Below are positions 24,835-49,414 of a stretch of DNA of 64,000 nt, in pieces. The DNA is taken from the IMG/VR virus record IMGVR_UViG_3300032307_000369, positions 1-64,000 of that record; one strand, given 5' to 3'. The notes under the pieces were generated by a model. The model was not told the DNA's origin. It made no database searches and worked only from the letters and a program-made list of their open reading frames with translations. Each line of letters begins with the position of its first letter. Within the stretch, counting starts at the first letter, position 1. A program made the translations under genes and the position numbers.

Positions 24835-25213
24835 TATCTATGTTAATCGAACAACCAGTATTATTCTTGTTAATACTACTGAAAAAGAACAAGAGCAGAT
24901 TAGCGATTGGTTCAACCAAAATCAACTAGCCCAAGAGCTTTCAATTTATTTTTACAATAACGAACGAAACCTTCAATGGCTAGTAATGTCATTTGCTGTG
25001 GCTCAATTTCGATATATCAATCTAGATAACACTCAGGATCAAAGTGGCTTGCTTGCAGGGCACTTTTTAAGTTCTGACAACTGTTATTATACTCTAACCG
25101 ATACTAATTTATATGAAGCATACAGATTAGTAAATACTTCAAAGTTAGAAACAATAACTGAATTTTTAGATAAGGTAATATCAATTGAGCACACTGAAAC
25201 ACCAGAACTGTGA
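24800..25213 (+). CDS. Hypothetical protein
   Basis: ORF overlapping both neighbours. Confidence 0.6.
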
Positions 25214-26405
25214 TTTTTGCGGCAAGGGTAAAGAAGACGTTGAAAAACTCGTCGTTGGTTCTAACGGATCAATCTGTAATGAGTGTGTGACTCTTTGTGA
25301 TAGAATTTTAAAAGATCAAAAAGGTAAAGTCAAAAACGATCACCTTAATCAATTTAATCCTGTTAGGATAAAAGAATATCTAGATGAATTTATTATAGGT
25401 CAGGATGAGGCTAAAATATCCGTTTGTGTTGGAGTAAGTCAACACTATAAAAGAATTAGCAGTTACACCAGTTATGTTGACTTGGACAAAAGTAATGTAA
25501 TGCTAATGGGTCCAACTGGTTGTGGCAAGACTCTCATGGTAAAGAAAATTGCAGAGTTTATTGATGTACCATTTGCACACTGTGATGCAAATACATTGAC
25601 TGAAGCTGGCTATGTTGGTGACGATGTAGAAACTGTAATACAACAATTATTACTTAGAGCTGATGGTGATGTTGAAGCAGCCTGCCGTGGAATAATTTAT
25701 ATTGATGAAATAGATAAAATAAGTAGAAAGGGCGAATCTAATACTGCTACCAAAGATGTGGGCGGTGAAGGGGTACAACAAAGTCTACTCAAAATGATTG
25801 AAGGTACAGTACTTAAAATTCAGGTGGGCAAAAAACGTGAAGAAGTAGAAATAGACACTAAGAATATTTTGTTTATTGTTGGCGGCAGTTTTGTTGGACT
25901 TGAAAAGATTATCAATGATAGATTAAACAATACTGGAATTGGATTTAATAGTGCATTAAAAAAGACTTCACAAACTAATCTATTTTCTAAAGTAGATCAA
26001 AAGGATTTGATCACTTATGGGTTAATTCCAGAGTTTGTGGGCAGATTTAGTATATTGACCACAGTTGATGATTTGACCAAAGAAGACCTGATTAAGATAT
26101 TAACAGTGCCACGTAATAATTTAATTAATCAGTATAAGTATTTGTTTGATATGGATGGTTTAGAATTAGATTTTGAACCAGAAGCTCTAGAAGCAATTGC
26201 AGATAAAAGTATAGAATCTAAAACGAACGCCCGCGGTCTAAGAAGTACTTTAGAAAAACTATTAATACCTTACCAATTTGAAGCTCAAGAATTGGTCAAG
26301 AAGGGTTTAAAGAAAATACTAATAAGTAAGAACACTGTGATTAAAGGAGAATTACCAATTTTTATGTTTAACCAGAGAAAGAAAGAAAATGCCAAAACAA
26401 TATAA
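25185..26405 (+). CDS. clpX: ATP-dependent Clp protease ATP-binding subunit ClpX
   Basis: C4 Zn domain [46 protein letters not shown] loop. Confidence 0.93.
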
Positions 26406-34489: not shown

Positions 34490-36379
34490 ATGTCAAAGAT
34501 CATCGGTATCGACCTCGGTACAACAAATTCATGCGTAGCCGTTATAGAGAACGGAATCCCCAAAGTTATTGAAAACAGCGAAGGTGCTAGAACAACACCA
34601 TCAATTGTTGCCTATGCCAATAACGAAATCTTAGTAGGTGCTAGCGCCAAACGTCAAGCAGTTACTAATCCTAAAAATACAATCTATGCTAGTAAGCGTC
34701 TAATTGGACGCAAGTTTGAAGAGCAGGCTGTACAAAAAGACATTGACCTAATGCCTTACAAAATTGTTCGTGCAGACAACGGTGATGCTTGGATTGAAGC
34801 TAACAACGACAAACTTGCACCCCCACAAATCTCCGCTGAAGTTCTTCGCAAAATGAAGAAAACTGCTGAAGATTACTTGGGCGAAACAGTTACTCAAGCA
34901 GTTATCACAGTACCAGCATACTTCAACGATAGTCAACGTCAAGCTACTAAGGATGCAGGTAAGATTGCAGGTTTAGAAGTATCGCGTATTATTAACGAAC
35001 CAACTGCGGCTGCTCTTAGCTACGGTGTTGATAAGACTGACAAAGCTGATAGAAAAATTGCTGTTTATGACCTTGGTGGTGGAACATTTGATGTCAGCAT
35101 TATTGACATTGCTGATGTTGATGGTGACAAACAAATTGAAGTACTGAGCACTAACGGAGACACGTTCTTGGGTGGTGAAGACTTTGACCAACGCATCATG
35201 GACTACTTAGTTGATGAGTTTAAGAAAGAACAAGGTGTTGACCTTAAGAAAGACATGTTGGCACTACAACGCTTAAAAGAAGCCAGTGAAAAAGCCAAGA
35301 TTGAACTATCAAGCAGTGCGCAAACAGATGTAAACTTGCCTTACATTACAGCAGATGCAAGCGGACCTAGACACATGGCAATTAAATTGACTCGTGCTAA
35401 ATTTGAGTCAATGGTTGAAGATTTGATTCAGCGCAGTTTAGATCCATGCCGTCAAGCTATGAAAGATGCAGGCGTGACAGCTAGCGACATTGACGAAGTT
35501 ATTTTGGTTGGTGGTCAAACCCGTATGCCTAAGGTGCAAGAAGAAGTTGAAAAACTTTTTGGTAAGGCTCCACGTCGTGATGTAAATCCTGACGAAGCTG
35601 TTGCAGTTGGTGCGGCAATTCAAGGCGCTGTTCTAGGTGGTGATCGTAAAGACGTATTGCTATTAGACGTAACTCCTTTGAGTCTTGGTATTGAGACACT
35701 GGGTGGTGTGATGACCAAGATCATTCAAAAGAACACAACTATCCCAACTAAAGGACAACAAACTTTCTCTACAGCAGAAGATAATCAACCAGCTGTGACA
35801 ATCAAGGTGTTCCAAGGCGAACGTGAACTTTGTCAGCATAATAAAATGTTAGGTGAATTTAATCTTGAAGGTATTGCTCCAGCACGTCGTGGTCAGCCAC
35901 AGATTGAAGTTACTTTTGACATTGATGCTAACGGCATTATGAACATTAGTGCTAAAGACAAATCAACTGGCAAAGAAAACAAGATCACTATTAAATCTGA
36001 TAGCGGCTTGAGCAAAGAAGAAATTGAAAAAATGATTCAAGATGCTGAAGCAAATGCTGAGGCTGATAAGAAAGCACGTGAACTAATTGATTCTCGCAAC
36101 AATGCAGAATCGCAAGTACACTCTGTTAAGAAAGACTTAACAGAATATGGTAGTAAAATTACTGAAGCTGATAAGTCTAACATAGAAACTGCTATTACAC
36201 ATGTAGAAGATTCTATCAAAGGCAATGATGCTGAAGTGATTACTAAATCAGTAAGTGCATTGTTTGAAGCAATGACACCACTGATTCAAGCAAAGACTAG
36301 TACTGCTTCAGAAAGCAACAACAATAATCAAGACGATGTTGTTGATGCTCAATACACTGAAACACCTAAGTCTGAATAA
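34490..36379 (+). CDS. dnaK: Chaperone DnaK (Hsp70)
   Basis: [50 protein letters not shown]. Confidence 0.98.
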
Positions 36380-36427
36380 GGTACCTTTAAGGGCCTAATT
36401 TGATTCTTACTTTAAAAGGAGATTATC

Positions 36428-36862
36428 ATGAATCAACTAAGAACTATAGATGCAGATACATTAACAAAAGCTCTAATTGGATTTGACACAATGTTTGATC
36501 AATTCGAACGTAGATTTTCTAATTCAATTAGCAACACTTACCCTCCTCATAATGTTATCAAAATTGATGACAACAATTATGAGATCCAAGTGGCTGTGAC
36601 TGGTTTTGGAAAAGACGAAGTCACTGTTGAACTTGATCAAAATGTATTAATTGTGACTGCTGGTAGAGATGTTGCAGAAGATGAAAAGACATATCTACAC
36701 CGAGGACTTGCACAACGCAATTTTGTTCGCAACTTCCCGCTTGCTGAACATATTGAGGTTAAAGGTGCAGAACAAAAGAATGGCATCTTGTCAATTAGAC
36801 TAGAACGCCTTGTTCCAGAAGCACTCAAGCCACGTCGAATTAATATCACGTATTCAGAGTAA
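36428..36862 (+). CDS. Small heat shock protein Hsp20 (IbpA-like)
   Basis: YPPHNV, IQVAVTGF, YLHRGLAQRNF.R.F.LA, A...NGIL.I.L.R.VPE. Confidence 0.93.
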   Translation: MNQLRTIDADTLTKALIGFDTMFDQFERRFSNSISNTYPPHNVIKIDDNNYEIQVAVTGFGKDEVTVELDQNVLIVTAGRDVAEDEKTYLHRGLAQRNFVRNFPLAEHIEVKGAEQKNGILSIRLERLVPEALKPRRINITYSE

Positions 36863-36866
36863 TTGG

Positions 36867-36897
36867 CAAAGGGGCCACTTGTGCCCCTTTGTTATTT
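36867..36897 (+). terminator. Intrinsic terminator
   Basis: CAAAGGGGC/GCCCCTTTG stem then TTATTT. Confidence 0.7.
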
Positions 36898-36934
36898 GTA
36901 GTATAATAAGTAAAAATAATATTTAGGAAATTAA

Positions 36935-37237
36935 ATGGGTGAAATTGCTACCAAACAAAAAAGTCTAGTAACTACAGATCTAATTGAACCTAGAAAGTTC
37001 AAAGTGATCTTCTTCAATGATGACAAAACTCCAATGGACTTTGTTATAGATTTGCTAATCAACTTGTTTAACCATGATCAAACTAGTAGCAGTAAATTAA
37101 CAATGGAAATTCATCATGAAGGCTCAGCAGTGGTTGGTGTTTATCCTTATGAAATAGCCGAGCAAAAAGGAATTGAATCCACACACATTGCACGACAAGC
37201 AGGATACCCATTACTAATTAAAGTTGAATCGGAGTAA
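36935..37237 (+). CDS. clpS: Clp adaptor ClpS
   Basis: VIFFNDDKTPMDFVI, M.IH.EG.AVVG.Y..EIAE.K, GYPL. Confidence 0.93.
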   Translation: MGEIATKQKSLVTTDLIEPRKFKVIFFNDDKTPMDFVIDLLINLFNHDQTSSSKLTMEIHHEGSAVVGVYPYEIAEQKGIESTHIARQAGYPLLIKVESE

Positions 37238-37239
37238 AG

Positions 37240-37785
37240 ATGAGTTTACGGGAAATTACTAAAGATCTACATCACGAAGCAGAAACAACAAAGTTTGCTA
37301 AGATGCTACTAAGTGGTAAAATTGGCAAGGAAGATTACAGAAACTATCTGTATAACTTACTAGCAATTTACGATCCAATTGAGTGGTACTGTAAACGTCA
37401 GGGCTTTCTTACTAACATGCCAGACCTGCCAAGACTCAAGTCTATCTATGCAGATTTTACAGAATTAGATGAGTGCGGATATTACTACCTAACTCCTGCT
37501 ACATTAGAATATCAAACATACTTACATAAACTAGGCAATGATCCAGAACGTAAACATCTTGTTAAGGCGCATTTATATTGCCGCCATATGGGCGACCTAT
37601 TCGGTGGCCAAATCATTAAGAAGCAAGTAGCACATATTTCAAGTGGTAAGTTTTACGACTTTGAAAATGCTGATGCTATGAAGATGGCTATTCGTGAAAC
37701 ACTTACAGATGACTTGGGTGACGAAGCTCGGGTGGCATTTGAATTTGCTATTAAAATGATGCGTGATCTCTATGCCGGAGAGTAA
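37240..37785 (+). CDS. Heme oxygenase (HemO/Ho1-like)
   Basis: L.E.TKDLHH.AE, AHLYCRHMGDLFGGQII, F.FE..D. Confidence 0.92.
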   Translation: MSLREITKDLHHEAETTKFAKMLLSGKIGKEDYRNYLYNLLAIYDPIEWYCKRQGFLTNMPDLPRLKSIYADFTELDECGYYYLTPATLEYQTYLHKLGNDPERKHLVKAHLYCRHMGDLFGGQIIKKQVAHISSGKFYDFENADAMKMAIRETLTDDLGDEARVAFEFAIKMMRDLYAGE

Positions 37786-38458
37786 AGTATGGGACACCCT
37801 AATTGAAATCCAAGCTCTACTTGAGACGTCCTTTGAAAAAACAGGAGTCGAAGTCTTCGAGCCTGGCATGGATCGTTTTAATCAACCTGGTTGGGTTAAT
37901 CGTGTATGGACTAGCGATAAGTATCGTAGGGCCCACGTTGATGTCGTCGATGCTAGGCTAACCAAAGGTCTTTGGATGATGCACTGTTGCATCTTCCCGC
38001 ATACACATAATCCAGCTCCAATTTACGGCTTTGATGTTATTGCTGGTAAGAATAAAATTACTGGCTGTTTCCACGACTATTCAAAAGCAGGTGATCCTAA
38101 TCATCCCATGATGCAGTGGTTTCATGATGAAGTCAGTAAGTTAGAATGGCGCAGAGAGCGAACTTTACCTGAATGGGCCACTAACATTTTTAGTGGTAGC
38201 ATGGTTGCCGCAGGCAATGTACAAGATGAACAAGAACTAGAGCAAATTACTAATCTTGCTAAAACCACTATAGAACACTATCTAAGCACAGTTGCTGATA
38301 CTAACAATACCGTTCCTGATACTACATGGGATCAAAACTACTACGCACAGAATCAAAAATGTAACCCGCATACACCCAGAGTTATGGTTAGTTTAGGGCT
38401 TTCAGAAGATGATGTCAAGCATTTTATACAGGAATGTCTGTTTCCAGAGATTCGATAA
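37772..38458 (+). CDS. Ferredoxin-dependent bilin reductase, PcyX/PcyA family
   Basis: RRAHVDVVD, WMMHCCIFP, PIYGFDVIAG, W...IFS, QKCNPHT; start set to ATG 37772. Confidence 0.88.
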   Translation: MPESKVWDTLIEIQALLETSFEKTGVEVFEPGMDRFNQPGWVNRVWTSDKYRRAHVDVVDARLTKGLWMMHCCIFPHTHNPAPIYGFDVIAGKNKITGCFHDYSKAGDPNHPMMQWFHDEVSKLEWRRERTLPEWATNIFSGSMVAAGNVQDEQELEQITNLAKTTIEHYLSTVADTNNTVPDTTWDQNYYAQNQKCNPHTPRVMVSLGLSEDDVKHFIQECLFPEIR

Positions 38459-38468
38459 ATAATACATT

Positions 38469-40280
38469 ATGCGTTTAGATGAATTTCAATTAGCGGGACA
38501 AGTCCCTTCAACTGTACAAAGAGCTGTTCCAGCAACGGCTCAACCCACTGCACAACCAGCAATGTCCACAACGGGCACTGGAGCAACTGAACAAGATGCA
38601 AAAAATGCTCTTATATCTCTTGTAGATAATAGTAAAGATTTGCCACCAGATTCGCCAGTTCATGAATTTGTAAACAAGTTCTTAAATACAATCTTAACTC
38701 ACATACAAGATATACCAGTTCAAGAAGCATCAAAAATGCTTCAGAATATACAAGATGCTAACTCTGAACTTCTTCAAACAATACTGTTAAATCTACAACA
38801 ACTGACCCCAGAAGAATTAGCTATCGTAACTTCAGAAACCTCAGACATTAATGCAAAAGTTGAAGCAGTTAAGAAAATTGCAGATAGACTGTTAAAAACA
38901 AAGCCAGTACAAAAGGCGTTCAATAAACAAGTGGCCACTATTGAATTAGACGTTAAAGGTAATATTGGTAAACTTGACAGCGCAATTGAAAAACGAGCAC
39001 AAAAATTTGCTAGAGATTTTGGACTACCATTGAAGTGGGCTAGAAACTTGATTGGTATGTTTGATGTAAACATTACTAGAGAACAACGTGATGAATTTTT
39101 AGCCGCATGTGAAGCAGGAACTGCTCTAGATGTTGGTCAAATGATACAAGATGGTGAAGGCAAAGTTGAAGATTACGTACTACTAACACAGCCTAAAATT
39201 AAAGAAGTATTTGACAGTGTAAAAGATACTCTATTAGACATTTCATTAAGTACAGGTCAACGTGGTGCCACAGGACCTTTTGAGGCCATGATGGCTATCA
39301 TGGGAGGTTGTAAAAAGCCTGCACCAAATGAGGGCGGAGACCTTAAAACTAAAGATGGCTTAAAACTTGAAGTTAAAGCCACTTCTATTAGTCCAAGTAC
39401 AGAATCTCCAACTTCTGGAGGTAATACTAATGCATGGTTAGATTCTACTGCTGGAAAAGAAATTTCTGGATCTGCATTGAGAAAAGTGGCCAACGAATGG
39501 CTAAGAGATGTTGCTCCTGAAGCGTTAACTGATAAAAAATTCCAAACTGTTTGGAAAAAGGCTGATTTTAGATCAGGTGGGTTATCAAGTCTAAAAGAAG
39601 CACTAATAATGTTGAGAGATTTAGCTTACAAACCAGCTCCTGGCAAAAAGCTAATAACTGCCATGATGGCTGAAATGTATCCGAACATCACAAATCTTCA
39701 AAGTGAAGGTTACGATTTTGATGCCGCTTGTATGAGAATACTGAGTGCTATTGGAAAAAGCACAGGGGACATCAAAGCAGACAAACCATTTAAAGATGCA
39801 ATTGCTAAAGAGCAAGGAGTCATGGGCTTGTTAGAGTATATTAAAGGAAAAGGTAATGACGGATTTGTTTTCTTTAATAGTTCAACACAAAAATTTAAAA
39901 TTGTAATTGGTGTTAAAGGTGTAATTGCAGAGTTAGGTGCTAAAGATTCTAACTTGCACTTTGATGCTCCAATGACCATGGGCGGTTCTGCTAAGGCTAG
40001 TGCAGGCGTATATTATGGTGCAAAACCAGGAAGTCCAGAAGGCCAAGAATACTTGCAAAAATTCAACTCAAGTCCAGAAAGAGTTGAACTATATAGACAA
40101 GTACAACTGGCAAAACAAGCGGCAGCTCAAAACAAATCATTAGCCATGATTGAAGCCGCAAAAGAAGGCTTAACAGAATTTGAGTTTGAAGGTAAAAAAT
40201 ATTCTGTATCTAAAGCCGCTTTAAAGAAATATTTTGAGCCTGACATCCCAATGTCTAGAACCAAAAAGAAAACCCGTTAA
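38469..40280 (+). CDS. Large late protein with PD-(D/E)xK-like motif; possible head-packaged protein
   Basis: ATAAATA 8 nt upstream; MRLDEF N-terminus; GPFE..M....GGDL......LEVK. Confidence 0.6.
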   Translation: MRLDEFQLAGQVPSTVQRAVPATAQPTAQPAMSTTGTGATEQDAKNALISLVDNSKDLPPDSPVHEFVNKFLNTILTHIQDIPVQEASKMLQNIQDANSELLQTILLNLQQLTPEELAIVTSETSDINAKVEAVKKIADRLLKTKPVQKAFNKQVATIELDVKGNIGKLDSAIEKRAQKFARDFGLPLKWARNLIGMFDVNITREQRDEFLAACEAGTALDVGQMIQDGEGKVEDYVLLTQPKIKEVFDSVKDTLLDISLSTGQRGATGPFEAMMAIMGGCKKPAPNEGGDLKTKDGLKLEVKATSISPSTESPTSGGNTNAWLDSTAGKEISGSALRKVANEWLRDVAPEALTDKKFQTVWKKADFRSGGLSSLKEALIMLRDLAYKPAPGKKLITAMMAEMYPNITNLQSEGYDFDAACMRILSAIGKSTGDIKADKPFKDAIAKEQGVMGLLEYIKGKGNDGFVFFNSSTQKFKIVIGVKGVIAELGAKDSNLHFDAPMTMGGSAKASAGVYYGAKPGSPEGQEYLQKFNSSPERVELYRQVQLAKQAAAQNKSLAMIEAAKEGLTEFEFEGKKYSVSKAALKKYFEPDIPMSRTKKKTR

Positions 40281-40331
40281 ACACTAATTCACTAAGCATT
40301 TAATTTGTTGCCAGTTCTCCGTTAAATAATA

Positions 40332-40865
40332 ATGACGGAATTCGGAGAGCGAGCAATGAAAAAACAAATGTATGCCTGTCTTCTATTGGCTTGGGCAAGT
40401 GCTACTCATTCGGCACCATTAGGCGACTTTCAATTTAAAAGTCCAGCATTTAATGGTACTGGGTATAGTTCACATGTACTAACCATAGAAAATCAAGAAC
40501 GTACACGTCAAAAAGAACGTGAAGATAAGGTTCAAGCGGCTTTAGATAAAGCTGCCTCTGAAGCTAAAAACACTAACTTATCAAAATTTCTAAGCAATTT
40601 AGAAAGTAGAATCTACGCACAAATTAGCCAAAACGTAGCAACCGCTATGTTTGCAAATAACGGATGTAGTGTTAGTAGTTCTTCATCATGTCAAGGTTCT
40701 GTAAATTTCCAAGGTAATCAAATATCATGGCAAAGAGTCGCTGATGCATTTAACTGCACAGGCTCATCTAACGGAACTTGTATTCAACTAACAGTTGCAG
40801 ATCCAACAGGCACAACTACTAACATCTATGTGCCGTTAGAATCATTCCAAATGCCAGGGAATTAA
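40332..40865 (+). CDS. csgF: Curli assembly protein CsgF-like
   Basis: Signal peptide, F.SPAFNG, SKFL.NLESRIYAQIS; start may be ATG 40356. Confidence 0.8.
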   Translation: MTEFGERAMKKQMYACLLLAWASATHSAPLGDFQFKSPAFNGTGYSSHVLTIENQERTRQKEREDKVQAALDKAASEAKNTNLSKFLSNLESRIYAQISQNVATAMFANNGCSVSSSSSCQGSVNFQGNQISWQRVADAFNCTGSSNGTCIQLTVADPTGTTTNIYVPLESFQMPGN

Positions 40866-40868
40866 TAT

Positions 40869-42107
40869 ATGAAAAAGACTCTATTATCCCTAGCAATTTT
40901 AAGTATGCTTAGTGGCTGTGCAATATTGCAGTCTACTGGAGAATTTGATAAAACTCCAGAAGTAACAGGTCAAATGAAAGATGTAAAAAAAGAATTTGAC
41001 ACTATTCCTGGACCATCAGCTGGTAGACCACTAAGTGTTGCTGTTTATAGTTTCCAAGATAAAACAGGACAACGTAGACCACAGGCTAATATTGCTAGTT
41101 TATCAACAGCAGTTACACAGGGCGGTGAAACATTCTTAATACAAGCACTACAAAATGTAGGTCGTGGAGAATGGTTTGACGTAGTTGAACGTGTGGGTGT
41201 TGATAATCTAACAAAAGAAAGATTAATAATTCGTCAAATGCGAGAAGCATACGAAGGAAAAGATGCTAAACCATTACTACCAATGCAATTTGCAGGTGTA
41301 ATATTTGAAGGTGGAATCGTGGGCTATGACTCTAGTACAACCAGTGGTGGAGTAGGACAGCGTATTTTTGGTATTGGCAAACAAACTCAATGGTCTACTG
41401 ACAGAGTTACAGTAAGTTTAAGAGCAGTGTCAGTAAACACTGGTAAAGTACTAGCCAGTGTAACTGTACAAAAGACCATTATGAGTTCAGCAGACAGTGT
41501 ATCTGCATTGAAGTTTTTTGATGCTGGAACACAGGCTTTTGAAGCTGAAGCAGGTTTGACTATAAACGAGCCAGGCACTTATGCTGTAAAAGCAACTGTT
41601 GAAATGGCAGTGGTTGAGTTAATTAAAGAAGGTCAACGCAAGGGTGTATGGGATTTTAAGCAAGAGGCTAAACAACCTCCAGCCATGTCTTTCATACCTC
41701 CTACACAGACAGCCCCAGTAATTAGCAGTGAAGTAAAACAAGAAGTTAAAGTTGAGGAGAAAAAAGATGTCGTGGTTCAATCACAAACCCAATCCGAAAC
41801 CAAAACCAAGGCCGTACCCAGTACCGCCACAGAAGTAAAGAATGAAGAACCTAATGCTAATTTACAAGTAACAGCAATGCAAACTGGTGTAAAGCCAACA
41901 GTAGATTTATTTGGAGTTAGATATTTAAAAGAAGATTCATTTGTATATAAAGAAGCAAATGAAAAAAGTCAGCGCACCTGGCTATTGAAGAAAGGTGCTG
42001 AATTATACATTATTACTCCGGGGCCTGAGGGTTGGCACCAAGTAAGAGACGCAAGTAAGCGTAAAGGATTTGTCAAAGATTCAGTGCTCGGAACTGACAA
42101 ACCATAA
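40869..42107 (+). CDS. csgG: CsgG curli secretion channel lipoprotein fused to a C-terminal SH3b-like domain
   Basis: Lipobox LSGC, VAVYSFQDKTGQ, STAVTQG, F.VVER.G.DNLTKER.IIR; C-terminal L.KG......GW..V....KGFV. Confidence 0.92.
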   Translation: MKKTLLSLAILSMLSGCAILQSTGEFDKTPEVTGQMKDVKKEFDTIPGPSAGRPLSVAVYSFQDKTGQRRPQANIASLSTAVTQGGETFLIQALQNVGRGEWFDVVERVGVDNLTKERLIIRQMREAYEGKDAKPLLPMQFAGVIFEGGIVGYDSSTTSGGVGQRIFGIGKQTQWSTDRVTVSLRAVSVNTGKVLASVTVQKTIMSSADSVSALKFFDAGTQAFEAEAGLTINEPGTYAVKATVEMAVVELIKEGQRKGVWDFKQEAKQPPAMSFIPPTQTAPVISSEVKQEVKVEEKKDVVVQSQTQSETKTKAVPSTATEVKNEEPNANLQVTAMQTGVKPTVDLFGVRYLKEDSFVYKEANEKSQRTWLLKKGAELYIITPGPEGWHQVRDASKRKGFVKDSVLGTDKP

Positions 42108-42204
42108 AGATAGCGAGTACGGAGGAATGTCGAAGTAAACTTAATTAACGGCTAATGGCCAAGGAGCGTGATTGGAGAACATATAATCCAATCGTGTATA
42201 GAAG

Positions 42205-43179
42205 ATGGAAAAAAGAAGAACAGGCGGTGGTGGGTTGTCGAGTAAATTACTCACTAGTTTAGTGTTGTCCGCAATGACTACATTGGGCTACGCGGCTGAC
42301 AATAGTATCTATATTGATCAAGCAGGTGATAACAGCACAATTACTATAACACAAGATGGTGCTGGAAATAGAGTAAAAGGTATATTACTTAACGGCACAG
42401 CTGGAGGCACAACTGATCCAGCAAAACTAACAGGCAATGCACAGACAATTAACATTGAACAGACTGGTGCAACCAACGTTTTGGCTGTTGGTGTTAACTC
42501 AACACAAGGTGGTTCAGTTTCTGGATACGCTAACGTGGGTGTGAATTTGAATTACCAAGTGAGTGGTGGTGGTAATACTGGTTATATTAATATTAATAAT
42601 AATGGTCAAGGCACTGCAATTGGTAATGTTGTTAGTGTTGTTCAAAGTGGTGGCGGTGCAACTACTACACTTAACATGACTGGCACAAGTAATCAATTAA
42701 CAGTTGGGCAAAGTGGTGGAGCTAATAACTCATTTACTGGCACAATTAATGCTGACGACACTGTAGCAACTGTGAGTAATACTTTAGGTGGCGGTAACAG
42801 TACAACATTAGACATGACTGGCAATAAAGGTCAAGTTAGTGTTACAACAACTGGTGCTACAAACACAACCAGCGTAACACAAAGTGCATTTGGAACAACT
42901 GGTGCGCAAGTATTAGTTAACATTAACGGTTCTGGCAATGACACAACAATTACACAAAGTGGACTATATGACCATTTTGCTAGTCTAACTGTAGTTGGAA
43001 ACAGTAATGACTTCACTATTGCACAGTCTGGTGGTTCTGCAACTGGACACTCTGCTACAATGACTGTTAATGGAAGTTCAAACGTTGTTGGTGTTACGCA
43101 ACAGGGCTCAGTTTCCAATCTAGTTAACATGGCAGTAAGTGGTGGTAATAATACATACACAATATTACAAAAAAATTAA
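42205..43179 (+). CDS. Curlin-repeat (CsgA/B-like) protein
   Basis: Signal peptide; repeated xNxxxIxQxGxxN strands (NSIYIDQAGDNSTITITQDG ... NNTYTILQKN). Confidence 0.8.
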   Translation: MEKRRTGGGGLSSKLLTSLVLSAMTTLGYAADNSIYIDQAGDNSTITITQDGAGNRVKGILLNGTAGGTTDPAKLTGNAQTINIEQTGATNVLAVGVNSTQGGSVSGYANVGVNLNYQVSGGGNTGYININNNGQGTAIGNVVSVVQSGGGATTTLNMTGTSNQLTVGQSGGANNSFTGTINADDTVATVSNTLGGGNSTTLDMTGNKGQVSVTTTGATNTTSVTQSAFGTTGAQVLVNINGSGNDTTITQSGLYDHFASLTVVGNSNDFTIAQSGGSATGHSATMTVNGSSNVVGVTQQGSVSNLVNMAVSGGNNTYTILQKN

Positions 43180-43188
43180 GAGGTTGGA

Positions 43189-44295
43189 ATGAACGTATGG
43201 AAAGCAATATTACTTGTTTCGTTACTAAACCTGCCAAATGCTCATGCGGCAATTGGTAAAGTAACGGAGCAAGTAAACATACCGCCTACAATTCAACGAG
43301 ACAAATCAACTTTGACTGGTAGTAAAGGCACTGGCGTTGAAATGAATGACGCTATTCAAACCAAAGCAGGCAAAGTAGGAATTACATTTCAAGACGATAC
43401 TAGAGTACAAGTAAACGAAAATTCAAAATTAGTCATAGACGACTTCGTCTATGATGCAAAAAGCAAAAGTGGTAAACTTGGTGCTAAAATTGCACTGGGC
43501 ACAGTTCGTTACGCTAGCGGACAAATTGCTAAAAATAGTCCACAGAACGTAAACCTAAATACACCCAGTGCCACAGTGGCAGTACGTGGCACTGACTTTA
43601 CAGCCACAGTAGATGAATTAGGTGAATCAACTATTATTTTGCTACCTAGTTGTCCTAATGATAGACCAATGCGTACAGTGAGAGATATTGAAGCGGGTTG
43701 TAAAACAGGTGTGATTGAAGTTAGTAATGACGTAGGTACTGTAGTATTGAATCAGCCATTCCAAGTGACTAAGGTACAAAGCAGAACACAACCGCCTACT
43801 CCTCCAAAAACATTAGAGTTATCAGAAATGGCCATTAGTAACTTGTTAATTATAAGTCCTCCAAAGGAAGTTAAACAAGCACAAGAAGAACAACGCAAAA
43901 TGTTTAATCCATTAGACATAGATTTCTTAAAAGAAAAAGGATTAGAAAATTGGCTTGACATGCAGGCTGGTATTATTTACGAAGACAAGTTAAAGAAAAA
44001 CTTTTTAGACAATGATTTTTTAGCAAGTTTGTTTGAGATTATTGGTAATGAATTAGATCAAAAATTCTTAGATCCTGTGGATCCTGTATTACCTGATTAC
44101 AAAAGAGCAAGCGGTATAGTTGCCTATAAAGATGATACCAGTGTTGAATTGTGTAGAGATAACGGAGCTGATATACAGTGTGTTAGAACTCCACTTACAC
44201 AAAATTCAACTATCTATCAACACCAAGGTAGTTTAGAATTTAAGAATAGAATTAATCAGGGCGGCAACACTACCATTACGCTGATACAACGATGA
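43189..44295 (+). CDS. FecR-domain secreted protein
   Basis: D.IQT......ITF.D.T.V.V.ENS.LVID.F, G.VRYASG, TPSATVAVRGTDF. Confidence 0.85.
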   Translation: MNVWKAILLVSLLNLPNAHAAIGKVTEQVNIPPTIQRDKSTLTGSKGTGVEMNDAIQTKAGKVGITFQDDTRVQVNENSKLVIDDFVYDAKSKSGKLGAKIALGTVRYASGQIAKNSPQNVNLNTPSATVAVRGTDFTATVDELGESTIILLPSCPNDRPMRTVRDIEAGCKTGVIEVSNDVGTVVLNQPFQVTKVQSRTQPPTPPKTLELSEMAISNLLIISPPKEVKQAQEEQRKMFNPLDIDFLKEKGLENWLDMQAGIIYEDKLKKNFLDNDFLASLFEIIGNELDQKFLDPVDPVLPDYKRASGIVAYKDDTSVELCRDNGADIQCVRTPLTQNSTIYQHQGSLEFKNRINQGGNTTITLIQR

Positions 44296-46019
44296 AAAAA
44301 TTTCTAATATTTCTATTTTTTGTTTGTTCAAATTCTTTTGCGGCTATCACTGACGGCAAGTTTGGTATCAATCAAATATTTGATGTGCAATACTGGTGGA
44401 ATGGTACAACCCTAAACGCCAGTAATTTCATTGCTCCTTATGACAAAAACTTTCAAACTGTAACTGCTACTACGGGACAATACTTCCAATTTTTTAATAG
44501 TACAACTAATCCTGGCAAACACGGATTAAAACTAATGAATAGTAATGGCACACAGGCAAGAATTATACACGACTACGGCGACATAACTGCCTTAGGTAAC
44601 GGTGCTATTTTCTATATTGGTAGTGGATTTTTTGGTAATGTTATTTCTACAGCACAGGGTTATAACTACGGTGCTAGTGCATCATTCACTAACATGGACA
44701 CAAGTGTTACTAGTACTGATTTAAACAACTATACGTTTGCAAGTACAACTCCGTTGGCTGCTGGACAAACTGCGGCACCCGCTGGTCCTGCTCCTACTGC
44801 TATCTATATGAACAATGCTACTGTAAAAATTACACGAGCAATACCAACCACAAGCAATAGTCCACCAGGTGAAGGTCCTAACAATGCGTTTGATAATAAC
44901 TCTGGCACAAAGTACCTAAACTTTGATAAAAAAAATGCAGGCGTTACTGTGCAGTTAAACACAGGTCGAGTAGTAACTGGGTTCACAGTTACAACAGCCA
45001 ACGACTTTAGTGGACGTGATCCTACTAGTTATAAATTGTATGGTAGTAATGATGGATCAACTTGGGTGTTAATCAAACAAGACACTATCACATTAAGTGA
45101 CAATAGATTTACAACTAGTTCAGTTATTAATGTAGGCAATACTACAGCTTATGCATATTACTTTATGTTGTTTCCAACAACCAAAGCAGGTGATGGTTGT
45201 GGCTTAAATTGTGATAGTATGCAAATAGCTGAACTAACATATTACTATGATTCTAATAGTACAGTAACTAGTACAGCCACAAGCTCTACCATTGTTGACC
45301 CTGTAAATGGTGCTAGTCCTTCAGTACAAGGCGGTACCATAACACAATCAAATGCTCCTACTAACCAAATTATAGGAAGTGGTGGCGGCAGTGTTAATAT
45401 TACTGCTGGTCAACAAAGTCGTGTGAATAATTGGAACAAAGGTTTAAATCAAATCCCAAATAATTATTTGTATATTGATCAAGTAAGCGGCAACTTTAAT
45501 AATGTAACCATTACACAAACCACTACTACAGGCAAAAATAGAATAGAAGCAACACTGAGTGGCACTGGTAGTAACACTGTCAACGCCACACAATCTGGCA
45601 CCAACTACTTCAATTTGAATATTGGTGGTGCTAACAATAATATGACTAGCCAGCAGTCCAACAATAGTTCAACTAGTAACTATAAAGAAACTACAATTAC
45701 TGGTAATAATAATATTATCAATACTAACCAAAAAGACAATGCTAATCATTTGATGTTCACTACAGTAACAGGGAACAGTAACAATGTGAACGCAGTACAA
45801 GAAGGTACAGGCGGACATTATTTAGAAAATAAACTTACAGGAAATGGGCATACAGTTCTTGTAAATCAAAATGGAAACACTGCCAACAATGCTAGGATTG
45901 ATTTAACCAATAGCGGAGGTGCTGGCAGTGTGGATTTACAACAGTCTGGTGGGAAATCTTTTACTATTATTCAAAGCTGTACTAACCCAGCTGGGTGTAG
46001 CACAGTTGTAAGACAATAA
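44292..46019 (+). CDS. Curlin-repeat protein with internal discoidin (F5/8 type C)-like domain
   Basis: Signal peptide; NAFDNN..TKYL, TANDF..RDP..Y.LYGSNDG..W; C-terminal N/Q-rich curlin-like strands. Confidence 0.75.
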   Translation: MKKFLIFLFFVCSNSFAAITDGKFGINQIFDVQYWWNGTTLNASNFIAPYDKNFQTVTATTGQYFQFFNSTTNPGKHGLKLMNSNGTQARIIHDYGDITALGNGAIFYIGSGFFGNVISTAQGYNYGASASFTNMDTSVTSTDLNNYTFASTTPLAAGQTAAPAGPAPTAIYMNNATVKITRAIPTTSNSPPGEGPNNAFDNNSGTKYLNFDKKNAGVTVQLNTGRVVTGFTVTTANDFSGRDPTSYKLYGSNDGSTWVLIKQDTITLSDNRFTTSSVINVGNTTAYAYYFMLFPTTKAGDGCGLNCDSMQIAELTYYYDSNSTVTSTATSSTIVDPVNGASPSVQGGTITQSNAPTNQIIGSGGGSVNITAGQQSRVNNWNKGLNQIPNNYLYIDQVSGNFNNVTITQTTTTGKNRIEATLSGTGSNTVNATQSGTNYFNLNIGGANNNMTSQQSNNSSTSNYKETTITGNNNIINTNQKDNANHLMFTTVTGNSNNVNAVQEGTGGHYLENKLTGNGHTVLVNQNGNTANNARIDLTNSGGAGSVDLQQSGGKSFTIIQSCTNPAGCSTVVRQ

Positions 46020-46709
46020 TTAAGACTTAAACAAATATCGTTTATGTAAATGTAATCGAGCCTTGTTATACTGTACAAATGTTATAACAAGAGCAACTGC
46101 CCAAGGCACAATAGCCGCGGCCCATGGAACAAGTCCTGCCCACCATGCAGCCATCAATGGTTCTTTCATTAGCATTAACATAGCAACAGCAAACAGTACA
46201 AACGAGCCTACAAATACTGTGTCAGGCCAACGCTGTAAAATCTTGCTGACCATAGTAGCACCAAACAAAATAATTGGCACTGAGATTAATAGTCCAGCAA
46301 TAATAAGAACAAAGTTTCCGTTAGCGGCTGCGGCAATACCTAGTGCATTGTCTATACCCATAACAGCGTCAGCAACTACAATAGTTGAAATTGCACCCCA
46401 GAATGTGTCCTTGGCTTCAATGTTGTGTTCACCGTGGTCAAACACTAGTTTCCAACCAATCCATATCAATGCGGCAGCACCTATAGCACGTAAGCCTGGA
46501 ATCATCAGTAGGTACGTTAATGCCGCAACACTTACAAAACGTATAGCGATAGCACCAAAGGTACCCCAAAAGATTGCCTTCTTGCGTAAGTGATCTGGTA
46601 ATTTATTAGCCGCCATTCCAATAACAAGAGCGTTATCACCAGCTAATACAATATCTATCAAAATGATAGCTAAAAAAGCCCAAAGGGCTTGAAGCGTAAA
46701 GAGTTCCAT
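46020..46709 (-). CDS. TerC/YjbE family membrane protein
   Basis: IDIVLAGDNALVIGMAA, AI..IVVADAVMGIDNALGIA. Confidence 0.92.
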   Translation of the reverse strand: MELFTLQALWAFLAIILIDIVLAGDNALVIGMAANKLPDHLRKKAIFWGTFGAIAIRFVSVAALTYLLMIPGLRAIGAAALIWIGWKLVFDHGEHNIEAKDTFWGAISTIVVADAVMGIDNALGIAAAANGNFVLIIAGLLISVPIILFGATMVSKILQRWPDTVFVGSFVLFAVAMLMLMKEPLMAAWWAGLVPWAAAIVPWAVALVITFVQYNKARLHLHKRYLFKS

Positions 46710-46835
46710 ACTTTTCCTTGAAATTTATGGTCTCACTTCTTTGTCTATATACCGGGCTTTCTAGCCGTGTTGACGATATATAAAGCCAACCCATGTCGGC
46801 TAGTTACTCCCCAAAAATATTTAGTTAAATACATG

Positions 46836-47372
46836 ATGCGAGCAAAAGAATTTATACTAGAAGCAGAAGCCAGTGATACTGAGTTAAAACAACGTTGGGG
46901 TGACTTTTCTCCAGAAGACAAGCCTATGCTTCCACAAACACGAGTTGGAGGTGCTCCTGCACCCACACTATGGACAGCATACAGTGTTATCCAAAACATT
47001 TTAGGTCGAAATCGAGTAACTGATGACGATGACGAACTAGAGCCTGGAATGTACTATGTTTATCAAAGTAATGAATCTCCAATGTTTAAGGATACCGGAG
47101 ACGGAGTTGGTAGTATAAATTTACCTAATTTAGATAGCACTGCGGCACGTGACGTTGCCACGGCAGCACACGAAGCTTACCATGCTTATGTACACAATAA
47201 GAGTCAGGGTGGCTTTGCTCATGCTAACGAAAAAATTATTAACAACCTAGCAGAAAAATGGTTAAGAAATCATTTATCTGGACCAGCTTTACATGTCGCA
47301 CTTGAAACAATAGTGGGCAGTAAAATTAGTTATGGTCCAAACCATATGCCTAAACCAGGAACTAAAAAATGA
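46836..47372 (+). CDS. Late protein with HExxH motif; possible head-packaged protein
   Basis: TTAAATA immediately upstream; MRAKEFILE N-terminus; AAHEAYH; start reset from 46767. Confidence 0.6.
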   Translation: MRAKEFILEAEASDTELKQRWGDFSPEDKPMLPQTRVGGAPAPTLWTAYSVIQNILGRNRVTDDDDELEPGMYYVYQSNESPMFKDTGDGVGSINLPNLDSTAARDVATAAHEAYHAYVHNKSQGGFAHANEKIINNLAEKWLRNHLSGPALHVALETIVGSKISYGPNHMPKPGTKK

Positions 47373-49414
47373 ATATTAAAAAAATATTATTAAGCCCTTG
47401 GACTGCCTTACTAACTCTAGCATTAGTAGTAGGTATACGTATAGCAGATCCTACATTTGTTGAAAGTGTAAGACTACGCTACTTTGACACGTTAATTACT
47501 GCCAAAGAACCAACTTTTAACAACATCGTAACTGTAAATATTGATGAAGCGAGTTTAGACAAATATGGACAATGGCCGTTGCCTCGTGCTGAGTATTCCC
47601 GACTTGTACGAGATTTATATCAGAGGGGAGCAGGGCTTGTTGTACTTAATGTGCTCATGCCAGAACCAGACCGTACAGGTGGCGACAATTCGCTGGGTCA
47701 AACTTTAAAAGAATTTCCTGTAGTACTAGGGTCAGTACCTAGTAATAAAACAAAAAATACACCAAGAGTTCCAGGCAGTGCAGTGCTAGGGCCAGAACAT
47801 TTAGATCAAATTATTCAATATCCTGGACTTATAGCCAACGTTCCGCAGTTAGAAAACTCAGCGGCTGGTGTAGGAATAGTATCAACACTACCTGAAGTAG
47901 ACGGTGTTAATCGTAGACTACCTCTTATCGTTACTGTTGACGGTAAACTTTATCCAAGCATAGCTATGGAAACACTCCGCGTTGCGGCTGGCGATAGCAC
48001 TTTTCAAGTAAAACTATTTGAAGGTGGTGTTGAAAAAATGCGTATACCTACATTTGGTCCTGTTACTACAGACAACTTAGGTCGTATATGGATTGATTGG
48101 AGCCAACAAAATCGTAGCTTCAGTTTAACCACATTACCAAAAGATTTAGAGGGAGCCATTGTTATTGTTGGTCCAACGGCTGCTGGCATTGGTAATCCAG
48201 TACCAACAAGTAAGGGCGCAGTATGGCCACATGAAGTACAAGCCGCAGTTATAGGCACTATGGTAAACGGTGTTGTTATTCAACGTCCTGATTATGCAGA
48301 CGGTGCTGAAATTATAGCGTTGTTGGCTTTTGGTTTACTATTAATTTTATTGTCAAGGTGGACTTATGTTGGAATTATTTCTACTGTGGTTATTATTGGT
48401 GCCGTCGTTCCTGGTACTTTCTACGCTTTCAATAATTGGCTCATCTTGGGAGACGCGACTGCGATCTCGTTTGGCCTTATTATCATTGCTCTTCATACTT
48501 ACGGCGTTAAGTTTGTAAGTGAGTTCTTACAGAAACAGGCAATTAAGAAACAGTTTGAAGGATATGCAAGTCCTACAGTAGTTAAACTGTTACAGGAAAA
48601 TCCAGACATCATCAAGAACGGAACAAAGCGTGAAGTTTCTATTGTATTTTCAGACTTACGTGGCTTCACACCCTTAGGTGAAAGTTTTGGTGATGATGTT
48701 AAAGGTCTAACAGAAGTTATGAATGGCTACATGGATGCTATCACACAACCTGTACTAGATGCAGATGGCATGATTATCAAGTATATTGGTGATGCAAGTA
48801 TGCACATACACAATGCTCCTATTGATGATCCGCATCATGCTAAAACAGCCGTGGCTACAGGACTTAAGATGTTAAAGGCTGTTAAACAGTTTAGTATTGA
48901 GTTGGAAGCTAAAGGTCGTCCAGGTGTTAAGATGGGTGCTGGCATCAATACTGGACTAGGCTATATTGGCGAAATGGGTTCAACCAAGCGTCATTCATAT
49001 GATGTCTTAGGTGATGCAGTGTCAACTGCCGCACGTATTGAAAGCAAATGTAAAGAGTACGGCTGTGTATTACTGGTTGGGGGTGCTACTGTAGAACAAT
49101 GCGGTGATGATTTCTTCTTCTTAAAAGTAGACGACCTAGCTGTTAAGGGTAAGAGTGTTGGGGTTGCTATCTATACAGTGTTAGATGATGTCACTGCTGA
49201 ATATCATGTGGCTAAAAAGATACATGATGCCATGCATAGTGCGTATAGATCACAAAAATTTAGCACAGCTATCAATATGTGCAAACAACTTAGAGATCAA
49301 TTTGACGGAAGATTGAGCGGCTACTACGATATGTGGATAGAACGCTGTGAGTTTCAGTTAACACAAACGTTACCAAAAGATTGGAACGGCGTGTTTATAG
49401 CAACTTCAAAATAA
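47369..49414 (+). CDS. CHASE2-domain class III adenylate cyclase
   Basis: IDE.SL..YGQWP.PR, CHASE2 plus 3 TM; VFSDLRGFT, KYIGDA, YDVLGDAVSTAARIE. Confidence 0.93.
   Translation: MNIKKILLSPWTALLTLALVVGIRIADPTFVESVRLRYFDTLITAKEPTFNNIVTVNIDEASLDKYGQWPLPRAEYSRLVRDLYQRGAGLVVLNVLMPEPDRTGGDNSLGQTLKEFPVVLGSVPSNKTKNTPRVPGSAVLGPEHLDQIIQYPGLIANVPQLENSAAGVGIVSTLPEVDGVNRRLPLIVTVDGKLYPSIAMETLRVAAGDSTFQVKLFEGGVEKMRIPTFGPVTTDNLGRIWIDWSQQNRSFSLTTLPKDLEGAIVIVGPTAAGIGNPVPTSKGAVWPHEVQAAVIGTMVNGVVIQRPDYADGAEIIALLAFGLLLILLSRWTYVGIISTVVIIGAVVPGTFYAFNNWLILGDATAISFGLIIIALHTYGVKFVSEFLQKQAIKKQFEGYASPTVVKLLQENPDIIKNGTKREVSIVFSDLRGFTPLGESFGDDVKGLTEVMNGYMDAITQPVLDADGMIIKYIGDASMHIHNAPIDDPHHAKTAVATGLKMLKAVKQFSIELEAKGRPGVKMGAGINTGLGYIGEMGSTKRHSYDVLGDAVSTAARIESKCKEYGCVLLVGGATVEQCGDDFFFLKVDDLAVKGKSVGVAIYTVLDDVTAEYHVAKKIHDAMHSAYRSQKFSTAINMCKQLRDQFDGRLSGYYDMWIERCEFQLTQTLPKDWNGVFIATSK

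Follow-up and report, generated by a model that had tools for sequence, protein, structure and literature searches.

An N-terminal tag resembling the T4 capsid-targeting sequence on nuclease-like, metallopeptidase-like and many other proteins of an uncultured T4-related jumbo phage

That a short N-terminal peptide can direct proteins into a phage head is a principle already known from T4, where it is called the capsid-targeting sequence (CTS) (PMC3012670, PMC9026906). In the T4 records, the internal proteins IPII and IPIII start with MKTYQEFIAE/A (the slash marks the cleavage by the gp21 prohead protease) and IPI with MKTFKEF...ITE/A. The cleavage sites read MAKINELLRE/S in gp24, MLKEQLIAE/A in gp22, and ...FLTE/A in gp23. 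The first ten residues of IPIII are enough for packaging; within the CTS, residues 4 and 7 serve in targeting and residues 8 and 10 in processing (PMC9026906). Here we describe two proteins, P1 and P2, which start with MRLDEFQLA and MRAKEFILE and are encoded in the first 64 kb (hereafter the window, 64,000 nucleotides) of the 245,550-bp IMG/VR virus record IMGVR_UViG_3300032307_000369, with an estimated completeness of about 70%. These N-termini belong to a real, modular, protein-level tag that occurs clade-wide and is the predicted counterpart of the CTS of T4. Positions of the features are collected in Table 1.

P1 and P2 are encoded by a T4-related jumbo phage of roughly 340 kb. Contigs related to this phage reach 330–350 kb, and its genome contains T4-type hallmark genes: a Peptidase_S77 prohead protease, a Gp23-family capsid protein, a T4-type portal, and rIIA (inside the window). 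The nearest cultured phages by capsid protein are Sinorhizobium Phosso (71%), Vibrio 2.275.O (69%), Pseudomonas PA5oct (67.5%), and Rak2-like coliphages (66%). A megablast search with the P1–P2 region gave no match.

An earlier sequence-only reading of the window had noticed the two N-termini and their likeness to the T4 CTS. Both starts stand, with the ATG at 38469 opening a frame of 603 residues and the ATG at 46836 one of 178 residues. The likeness to the CTS extends to place, length, and residues (E-F-I-x-E), and the phage does have a T4-type prohead protease. Phe, Ile/Leu, and Glu follow in the same order as in the CTS, one position earlier, and, as a sequence, the tag of P2 fits the prohead-protease site pattern as I-L-E9/A. 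Both genes carry the tag as claimed, but it is not special to them, since about a dozen proteins of this phage have it. In a scan of the genome for shared N-termini, as that reading had proposed, starts with M[RK]xx[EDQ][FLI] are found in 11 of the 261 genes called in the 245.5-kb record versus 1.6 expected (binomial P 5.6e-7 given MK/MR starts), and the same pattern occurs at internal Met positions in 7/1419. Nine of the 11 tagged genes lie in a single block (108990–118576), which holds also a tenth tag-like start (MNLFELF at 111979).

Among relatives, 40 related IMG/VR loci were surveyed, and 106 of their 876 called genes have tagged starts. Once stripped of the tag, the tagged proteins of this genome and of these loci fall into at least 24 families without mutual similarity, among them muramidase-like proteins and a nucleotidyltransferase fusion. 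The exact variant MRAKEFI is present in at least 119 IMG/VR stretches, with 17 families in the first 80 loci; it marks true starts, because a stop codon almost always lies only a few codons before it. From 68 distinct tags the consensus is M-[RK]-[IA]-x-E-[FIL]-[IL]-x-E-[AS], in which positions 3 (I/A), 7 (I/L), 9 (E), and 10 (A/S) are conserved though they lie outside the search pattern. Of the 68 tags, 35 have Glu at position 9 and another 15 have it at position 8; position 10 is A/S. The tag holds two overlapping hydrophobic-x-Glu sites (positions 3–5 and 7–9). Its codon usage differs between copies, and it is retained, with differing codons, in homologues of only 35%–45% identity. Selection thus appears to act on the tag at the protein level: Homologues retain it, its codons differ, and the linker that follows is variable. 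Compared with the remaining proteins, the tagged ones are more basic (median isoelectric point [pI] 8.1 vs. 5.9, P 0.02). The tag is not described in the papers on the T4 CTS and on PA5oct considered here, with no literature search aimed at the tag itself.

We considered also an origin at the nucleotide level, as a leaderless signal or a recombination cassette. It was rejected, because most tagged genes stand in operons behind ordinary ribosome-binding sites and their tag codons differ.

The head module of this phage follows that of T4. The Peptidase_S77 protease (PF03420; 187857–188282, 91 bits; gene 187791–188417) is 32% identical to T4 gp21, and the motifs with the catalytic His (DHP) and Ser (GVSSRG) align. 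The genes occur in the order portal, small protein, 280-aa protein, protease, scaffold-position protein, capsid protein, which is the order 20-67-68-21-22-23 of T4. Directly behind the portal, a frame of 86 aa starts with MFLREFIYF, the tag core in register. Its counterparts in cultured relatives have the full tag: The one in PA5oct, gp333, starts with MKINDIITE and is flagged as a virion protein by electrospray ionization tandem mass spectrometry (ESI-MS/MS); the counterpart in Vibrio 2.275.O, protein 441, starts with MKLVELFE. A second PA5oct virion protein with the ESI-MS/MS flag, gp135, starts with MHLFELF (no BLAST homologue of it was found in the genome of the window phage). Virion proteins make up 93 of the 461 PA5oct proteins (PMC7318152), and, with such a base rate, these tag-like starts give modest support only. 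The capsid protein (189544–190731) has YLAE/SATAGSTSAGNVA at its likely cleavage site (L-A-E/SATAGSTSA), and a tagged protein of 78 aa (118340–118576) has IITE/TATAGSTSASNIA (I-T-E/TATAGSTSA), that is, the same sequence after the hydrophobic-x-Glu. Homologues of this 78-aa protein (61–86 aa) adjoin P2 in many relatives. At 179881–181020 of the PA5oct record (NC_071039.1), the annotation gives another head maturation protease, gp212, a protein found in virions; in its divergent neighbor gp213, MKIKEIILE occurs five codons after the annotated start.

The model of P1 (mean predicted local distance difference test [pLDDT] 83) shows, in order, the tag, a disordered linker, a four-helix bundle, long helices, the domain at 250–520, and a basic tail. 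Column conservation across homologues is 0.44 in the tag versus 0.18 in the linker. The four-helix bundle is a common helical arrangement that implies no function; it fills the list of matches in the wide structure search with the whole model, and Foldseek with the whole model gives no match at E 0.001 or better. In the nuclease-like domain, the motif is GGD-LKTKDGLK-LEVK, i.e., D291-x9-E301-x-K303. The PD-(D/E)xK-type motif of the sequence-only reading is therefore present, and invariant, but with a spacing of eight residues instead of six. The secondary-structure context fits PD-(D/E)xK enzymes, with the E on a helix, the D at the start of a strand, and ExK on the next strand; a helical insert of about 130 residues breaks the core. 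Residues 160/257–519 match PvuII, NhoI, the N-domain of Eco15I, and HinP1I weakly (Z only 3.3–3.7), and among named ESM Atlas clusters those of restriction endonucleases come nearest (scores 0.78–0.80). The invariant residues, the structural matches, and the ESM Atlas neighbors are three weak lines that agree on a nuclease-like core. In Pfam and PHROG scans, P1 has no family match, and its profile against PDB sequences finds nothing on the catalytic motif (the best row, a transport protein at E 1e-4, covers an unrelated stretch). Homologues form at least 122 clusters, on contigs up to 340 kb. P1 is a multidomain protein with a probable PD-(D/E)xK nuclease-like core and likely a nuclease.

P2 has a second ATG three nucleotides 5′ of its start (at 46833), and the start is probably at 46836, because homologues start with MR/MK. 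The HExxH motif announced by the sequence-only reading is HEAYH. The model (mean pLDDT 78) brings, in the wide structure search, top rows that are mostly zincins: SPRTN (Z 6.1), M32 carboxypeptidases, minigluzincins, ArdC, CapP, and YbeY (Z 5.0–6.1). All Foldseek matches have E-values >0.1. In the ESM Atlas, the nearest named clusters hold small SprT-like and M78-like phage proteins, at a score of 0.89 that gives no more than a lead. P2 belongs to no Pfam or PHROG family, with scattered sub-threshold matches to Zn_peptidase_2, SprT-like, and DUF5700 in a few members, and its profile has no match among PDB sequences. A profile search of 1.84 billion representatives returns 814 relatives, nearly all without a name, and the tag is present on many of the core-type relatives. 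P2 is, from its model and motif, a candidate small metallopeptidase of the zincin type, with HExxH and a downstream Glu. Of the nuclease fold and metalloprotease first proposed for the pair, the zincin-like HExxH and the PD-(D/E)xK-type residues hold, but neither protein falls into a curated family. In some homologues of P2, 20–45 additional residues stand between the tag and the conserved core. The neighbors of P2 are a TerC-family membrane protein (46020–46709, minus strand) and a CHASE2-domain adenylate/guanylate cyclase (47369–49414). In many relatives, its flanks are occupied by other tagged genes instead, so that the genomic position of P2 has changed.

P1 and P2 had also been called late genes of a leaderless type. 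This description suits P1, with ATAAATA seven nucleotides before its ATG; P2 has only the weaker TTAAATA. The word ATAAATA occurs in 35 copies in the genome, 24 of them within 60 nucleotides upstream of called gene starts. Being rare in the genome and strongly tied to gene starts, it behaves like the T4 late promoter TATAAATA. The genes behind it include large ones that look structural by size and position, as well as P1 and the tagged gene at 111979. In four genes (2445, 38469, 111979, 151022), the word precedes the ATG by only 4–7 nucleotides and no ribosome-binding site is present, a layout suggestive of leaderless late transcripts; a distant, untagged homologue of P1 (L052) has the same spacing of seven nucleotides. 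P1 appears to be a late gene, and a leaderless late transcript is plausible for it.

Table 1. Positions of P1, P2, their parts, and associated features (record numbering, which is also that of the window; the last row refers to relatives)
Feature	Position	Strand	Description
ATAAATA, T4-late-promoter-like word	38455..38461	+	7 nt upstream of the P1 ATG, no Shine-Dalgarno between
P1	38469..40280	+	603 aa: tag, variable linker, four-helix bundle, PD-(D/E)xK-like domain, basic C-terminal tail
P1 N-terminal tag MRLDEFQLA	38469..38495	+	M[RK]xx[EDQ][FLI] start in 83/116 full-length homologues
P1 linker, P/A/Q/T low complexity, residues 10–40	38496..38588	+	indel-rich, hypervariable among homologues; model pLDDT <50
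P1 four-helix bundle, residues 41–144	38589..38900	+	DinB/BstA-like bundle matches, Z 8–9
P1 PD-(D/E)xK-like domain, residues 250–520, large helical insert	39216..40028	+	weak structural matches
P1 candidate catalytic residues E272, D291, E301, K303	39282..39377	+	invariant in 101 aligned homologues
TTAAATA, imperfect, weaker copy	46825..46831	+	4 nt before the P2 start
P2, zincin-like metallopeptidase candidate	46836..47372	+	178 aa; 241 homologue clusters, 54%–87% identity
P2 N-terminal tag MRAKEFILE	46836..46862	+	ends I-L-E then A; on all 119 full-length listed homologues
P2 HEAYH, residues 112–116	47169..47183	+	on long helix 104–123 (model); H112, E113, H116 invariant in 61 sequences
P2 E132 (in N-E-K), candidate third zinc ligand	47229..47231	+	on next long helix, 132–146 (model); N131, E132, K133 invariant in 61 sequences
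Tagged protein, 128 aa	start 109333		weak metalloprotease match
Tagged protein, 800 aa	start 111979		DUF6267 + cytidyltransferase
Tagged protein, 223 aa	start 115638		VanY-like peptidase (2e-8)
Tagged protein, 377 aa	start 116596		GH19-type wall hydrolase (phrog_181, 2e-27)
C-terminal module of about 55 residues, examples	P0415-P0510; L015:947-1699, L016:633-1322, L040:10001-11095		relatives only

Several other tagged proteins of this genome resemble enzymes (Table 1), and those of relatives include a LysM-GH19 protein and an amidoligase-like protein. A separate, putative lysis cassette has an untagged GH19-type candidate endolysin at 100560 (Pfam GH19 24.4 bits, just below the 25.5-bit cut-off), followed by short frames with N-termini that look, by eye, membrane- or lipoprotein-like. 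Because this candidate exists, the tagged GH19 and VanY-like hydrolases are additional to the lysis enzyme; they would be extra wall hydrolases, as virion lysins would be. A possible fusion of P2 with GH19 (P0364) was considered as a clue to cell-wall action and set aside: A Tat-like signal separates the P2 part from the GH19 part, which suggests two genes read through.

Capsid targeting, with removal of the tag by the prohead protease, is the reading that we favor, with modest confidence. The tag would bind the scaffolding core during prohead assembly, the gp21-type protease would cut after Glu5 and/or Glu9, at [IAL]-x-E sites, and the mature enzymes would remain with the packaged DNA and exit with it at infection. 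This reading is favored because it explains the place and composition of the tag, the protease-site ending, the head-module bearer, the late-promoter word, and the enzyme cargo. The sequence-only reading went further and saw in P1 and P2 effectors acting at the start of infection. That is one reading of their role; they could just as well help to penetrate the cell wall or act within the head. A wider proposal, which we put forward tentatively and hold to be somewhat doubtful as a whole, is that an uncultured, abundant clade of T4-related phages of ∼340 kb relies on an N-terminal code of ten residues by which a large and changeable enzyme arsenal enters the capsid for injection, with some sublineages adding a basic C-terminal module of 55 residues. 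The cargo would then comprise a nuclease, zincin proteases, wall hydrolases, a nucleotidyltransferase, and an amidoligase-like protein.

Several observations weigh against capsid targeting. The tag is one residue shorter than that of T4, and the predicted cleavage site of the capsid protein is about 12 alignment columns from the T4 site. The tag of P1 has no Glu at position 9, and the cleavage rule holds in it only at L-D-E5. About a fifth to a quarter of the homologues of P1, distant ones among them, occur without the tag; in one checked example (P0054), there is no room for it. The T4 internal proteins are small, basic, and hypervariable, whereas P2 is not basic (pI 5.8) and is 70%–87% identical across relatives, and P1 has 603 aa. 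The cultured relatives PA5oct and Vibrio 2.275.O have few tags apart from the head-module protein, and P1, P2, and two further tagged proteins give no tblastn match among GenBank phages, so that no cultured relative with P1 or P2 was found. The homologues of the DUF6267-cytidyltransferase in cyanophages and pelagiphages are in the replication module and mostly untagged.

The tag might instead serve for assembly, or be a protease-removable pro-segment, on proteins that are not injected. These would be transient parts of the core or scaffold, head-maturation enzymes, or other virion structure, and P1 and P2 would act in the producing cell or in the prohead. The clearest tag bearer of the cultured relatives is indeed a small protein at a head-core position, the conservation of P2 equals that of core structural genes, and gp22, gp67, and gp68 of the T4 scaffold core, whose N-termini are similar, undergo degradation for the most part (PMC9026906). 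We nevertheless consider this unlikely: A nuclease-like protein, zincins, and wall hydrolases make little sense as scaffold, wall hydrolases act only outside the cytoplasm of the producing cell, and the tagged families, diverse and turning over between relatives, are cargo-like and not machinery-like. A resemblance by chance, or one produced by the A-rich second codons that follow start codons in an AT-rich genome, has next to no probability. Fifty of the 261 genes do start with MK or MR, so that position 2 of the tag alone means little, but the binomial P already takes these starts as given, positions 3, 7, 9, and 10 are conserved without having been selected by the pattern, and the tag survives with different codons in remote homologues. 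A chance origin of the tag is excluded.

An N-terminal degron or a chaperone-binding site, by which the phage proteostasis machinery would control when the enzymes fold or how long they last, is a live rival because the phage carries a full Clp/DnaK set (ClpP, ClpX, a ClpA/B-type ATPase, ClpS, DnaK, DnaJ, HSP20, and a peptide deformylase). The gene for ClpS precedes P1 by 1.2 kb, those for the Clp ATPase and the deformylase stand immediately before the tagged block, and some N-terminal Met-basic-hydrophobic motifs are recognized by ClpX. On the other hand, ClpS requires a free N-terminal Leu, Phe, Tyr, or Trp. The tag core is acidic and hydrophobic (E-F-I-x-E) and ends in the prohead-protease pattern, for which a degron has no reason; the motif is also on the head-module protein of relatives; and T4, which is not known to have Clp genes, has an equivalent tag. 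We regard a proteostasis signal as improbable. Equally improbable, in our view, is a tag that docks proteins to another shared partner in the infected cell (e.g., a replication or membrane complex), the likeness to the T4 CTS being convergent. The tagged block does lie between chaperone genes and a likely replication module (891-aa frame at 120689), and one tagged protein is a nucleotidyltransferase fusion with homologues in the replication module. Docking, however, comes without a known candidate partner and leaves the [IL]-x-E ending, the head-module bearer, and the late-promoter word unexplained.

If capsid targeting is correct, the rule M-[RK]-x-x-E-[FIL]-[IL]-x-E, together with an S77 protease, would predict the injected proteome of an uncultured group of giant phages and extend the capsid-targeting principle of T4 to large enzymes and to phages well outside the T-even group. 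A place and a time of action could be assigned to dozens of unknown protein families, and the arsenal would work like the effector repertoire of a secretion system, readable straight from sequence. P1 and P2 would be concrete candidates for early host take-over or anti-defence, and new tags would be at hand for loading foreign proteins into large capsids.

A second kind of shared end occurs in relatives, a C-terminal module of some 55 residues with hardly any variation, ENFADG[KR]NPQDKGDSKRHG..TKASVS.LRK.AKQGGRKGQLAHW.ANMK.GRAKKK. It ends hundreds of otherwise unrelated proteins, some homologues of P2 included; it is not found in the 245-kb genome of the window phage and has no Pfam match. Among the 96 proteins listed at rank 55 and below, mostly matched through this module, 40 have the N-terminal tag as well. 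Inside the tagged block, an untagged frame of 156 aa (115171–115641) has, by eye, a Dps/ferritin-type look (FHWNVEG...).

The surroundings of P1 and P2 hold further gene groups. Heme oxygenase and a ferredoxin-dependent bilin reductase are adjacent (37240–38458), directly upstream of P1; large freshwater phages are reported to have the same two genes as a pair (bioRxiv 10.1101/2020.02.13.942896). Between P1 and P2, a curli-type (type VIII secretion) block (40332–46019) encodes a CsgF-like protein, CsgG with a C-terminal SH3 domain, and curlin-repeat, FecR-domain, and F5/8C-domain repeat proteins. The N-termini of the block are signal-peptide-like by eye, and TAAATA occurs just upstream of csgF. 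A literature search joining curli or CsgG with jumbo phages gave no paper combining them among the matches listed. The near-complete proteostasis set is distributed over the window (ClpX, DnaK, HSP20, and ClpS at 25185–26405 and 34490–37237) and the rest of the genome (ClpP, DnaJ, peptide deformylase, and the ClpA/B-type ATPase at 68671–69246 and 104155–107784).

Compared with known enzymes, P1 shares with the PD-(D/E)xK enzymes PvuII, NhoI, and HinP1I a helix-strand-strand arrangement with E272, D291, and E301-x-K303, in matches that are weak but repeated; it differs by the low Z, the helical insert in the core, and the absence of a hidden Markov model match. P2 has, like SprT/SPRTN, minigluzincins, M32, the protease domain of ArdC, and CapP, an HExxH helix, a Glu on the next helix, and a small β-sheet in front, but the Z values are modest and no Pfam, PHROG, or PDB sequence matches.

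As regards delivery, the ejection proteins of phiKZ-like phages and SPN3US and the Dar proteins of phage P1 are cases in which many head-loaded proteins are delivered with the DNA, with processing after Glu, at x-x-E motifs (PMC5694885). There, the propeptides are mostly of 80–130 residues without a common decapeptide, and the phage lineage is another one. PA5oct gp333 and Vibrio 2.275.O protein 441 share the position of T4 gp67 and the N-terminal motif of the 86-aa frame described here, but their genomes have few other tagged genes and no homologue of P1 or P2. T4 itself is closest. Like IPI, IPII, and IPIII, the proteins described here are unrelated and have in common a short N-terminal tag, with the core E-F-I-x-E and an [IL]-x-E ending (PMC3012670, PMC9026906); the S77 protease, the T4 head-gene order, the partly clustered tagged genes, and the rather basic tagged set are further likenesses. 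In T4, however, there are three small DNA-associated proteins, whereas here about a dozen occur per genome, in at least 24 families and with many large enzymes of 120–800 aa; P2 is strongly conserved and not hypervariable; and packaging and cleavage are here predicted from sequence. With the packaged ADP-ribosyltransferase Alt of T4 and with engineered CTS fusions (nuclease, GFP, β-galactosidase), a ten-residue tag loads enzymes into the head and delivers them to the host (PMC9026906, PMC3012670). The enzyme cargo of the present phages would, by comparison, be natural and diverse. What is new relative to T4 is the lineage (uncultured jumbo phages related to PA5oct and Rak2), a tag shorter by one residue, the scale, and large enzymes as putative cargo.

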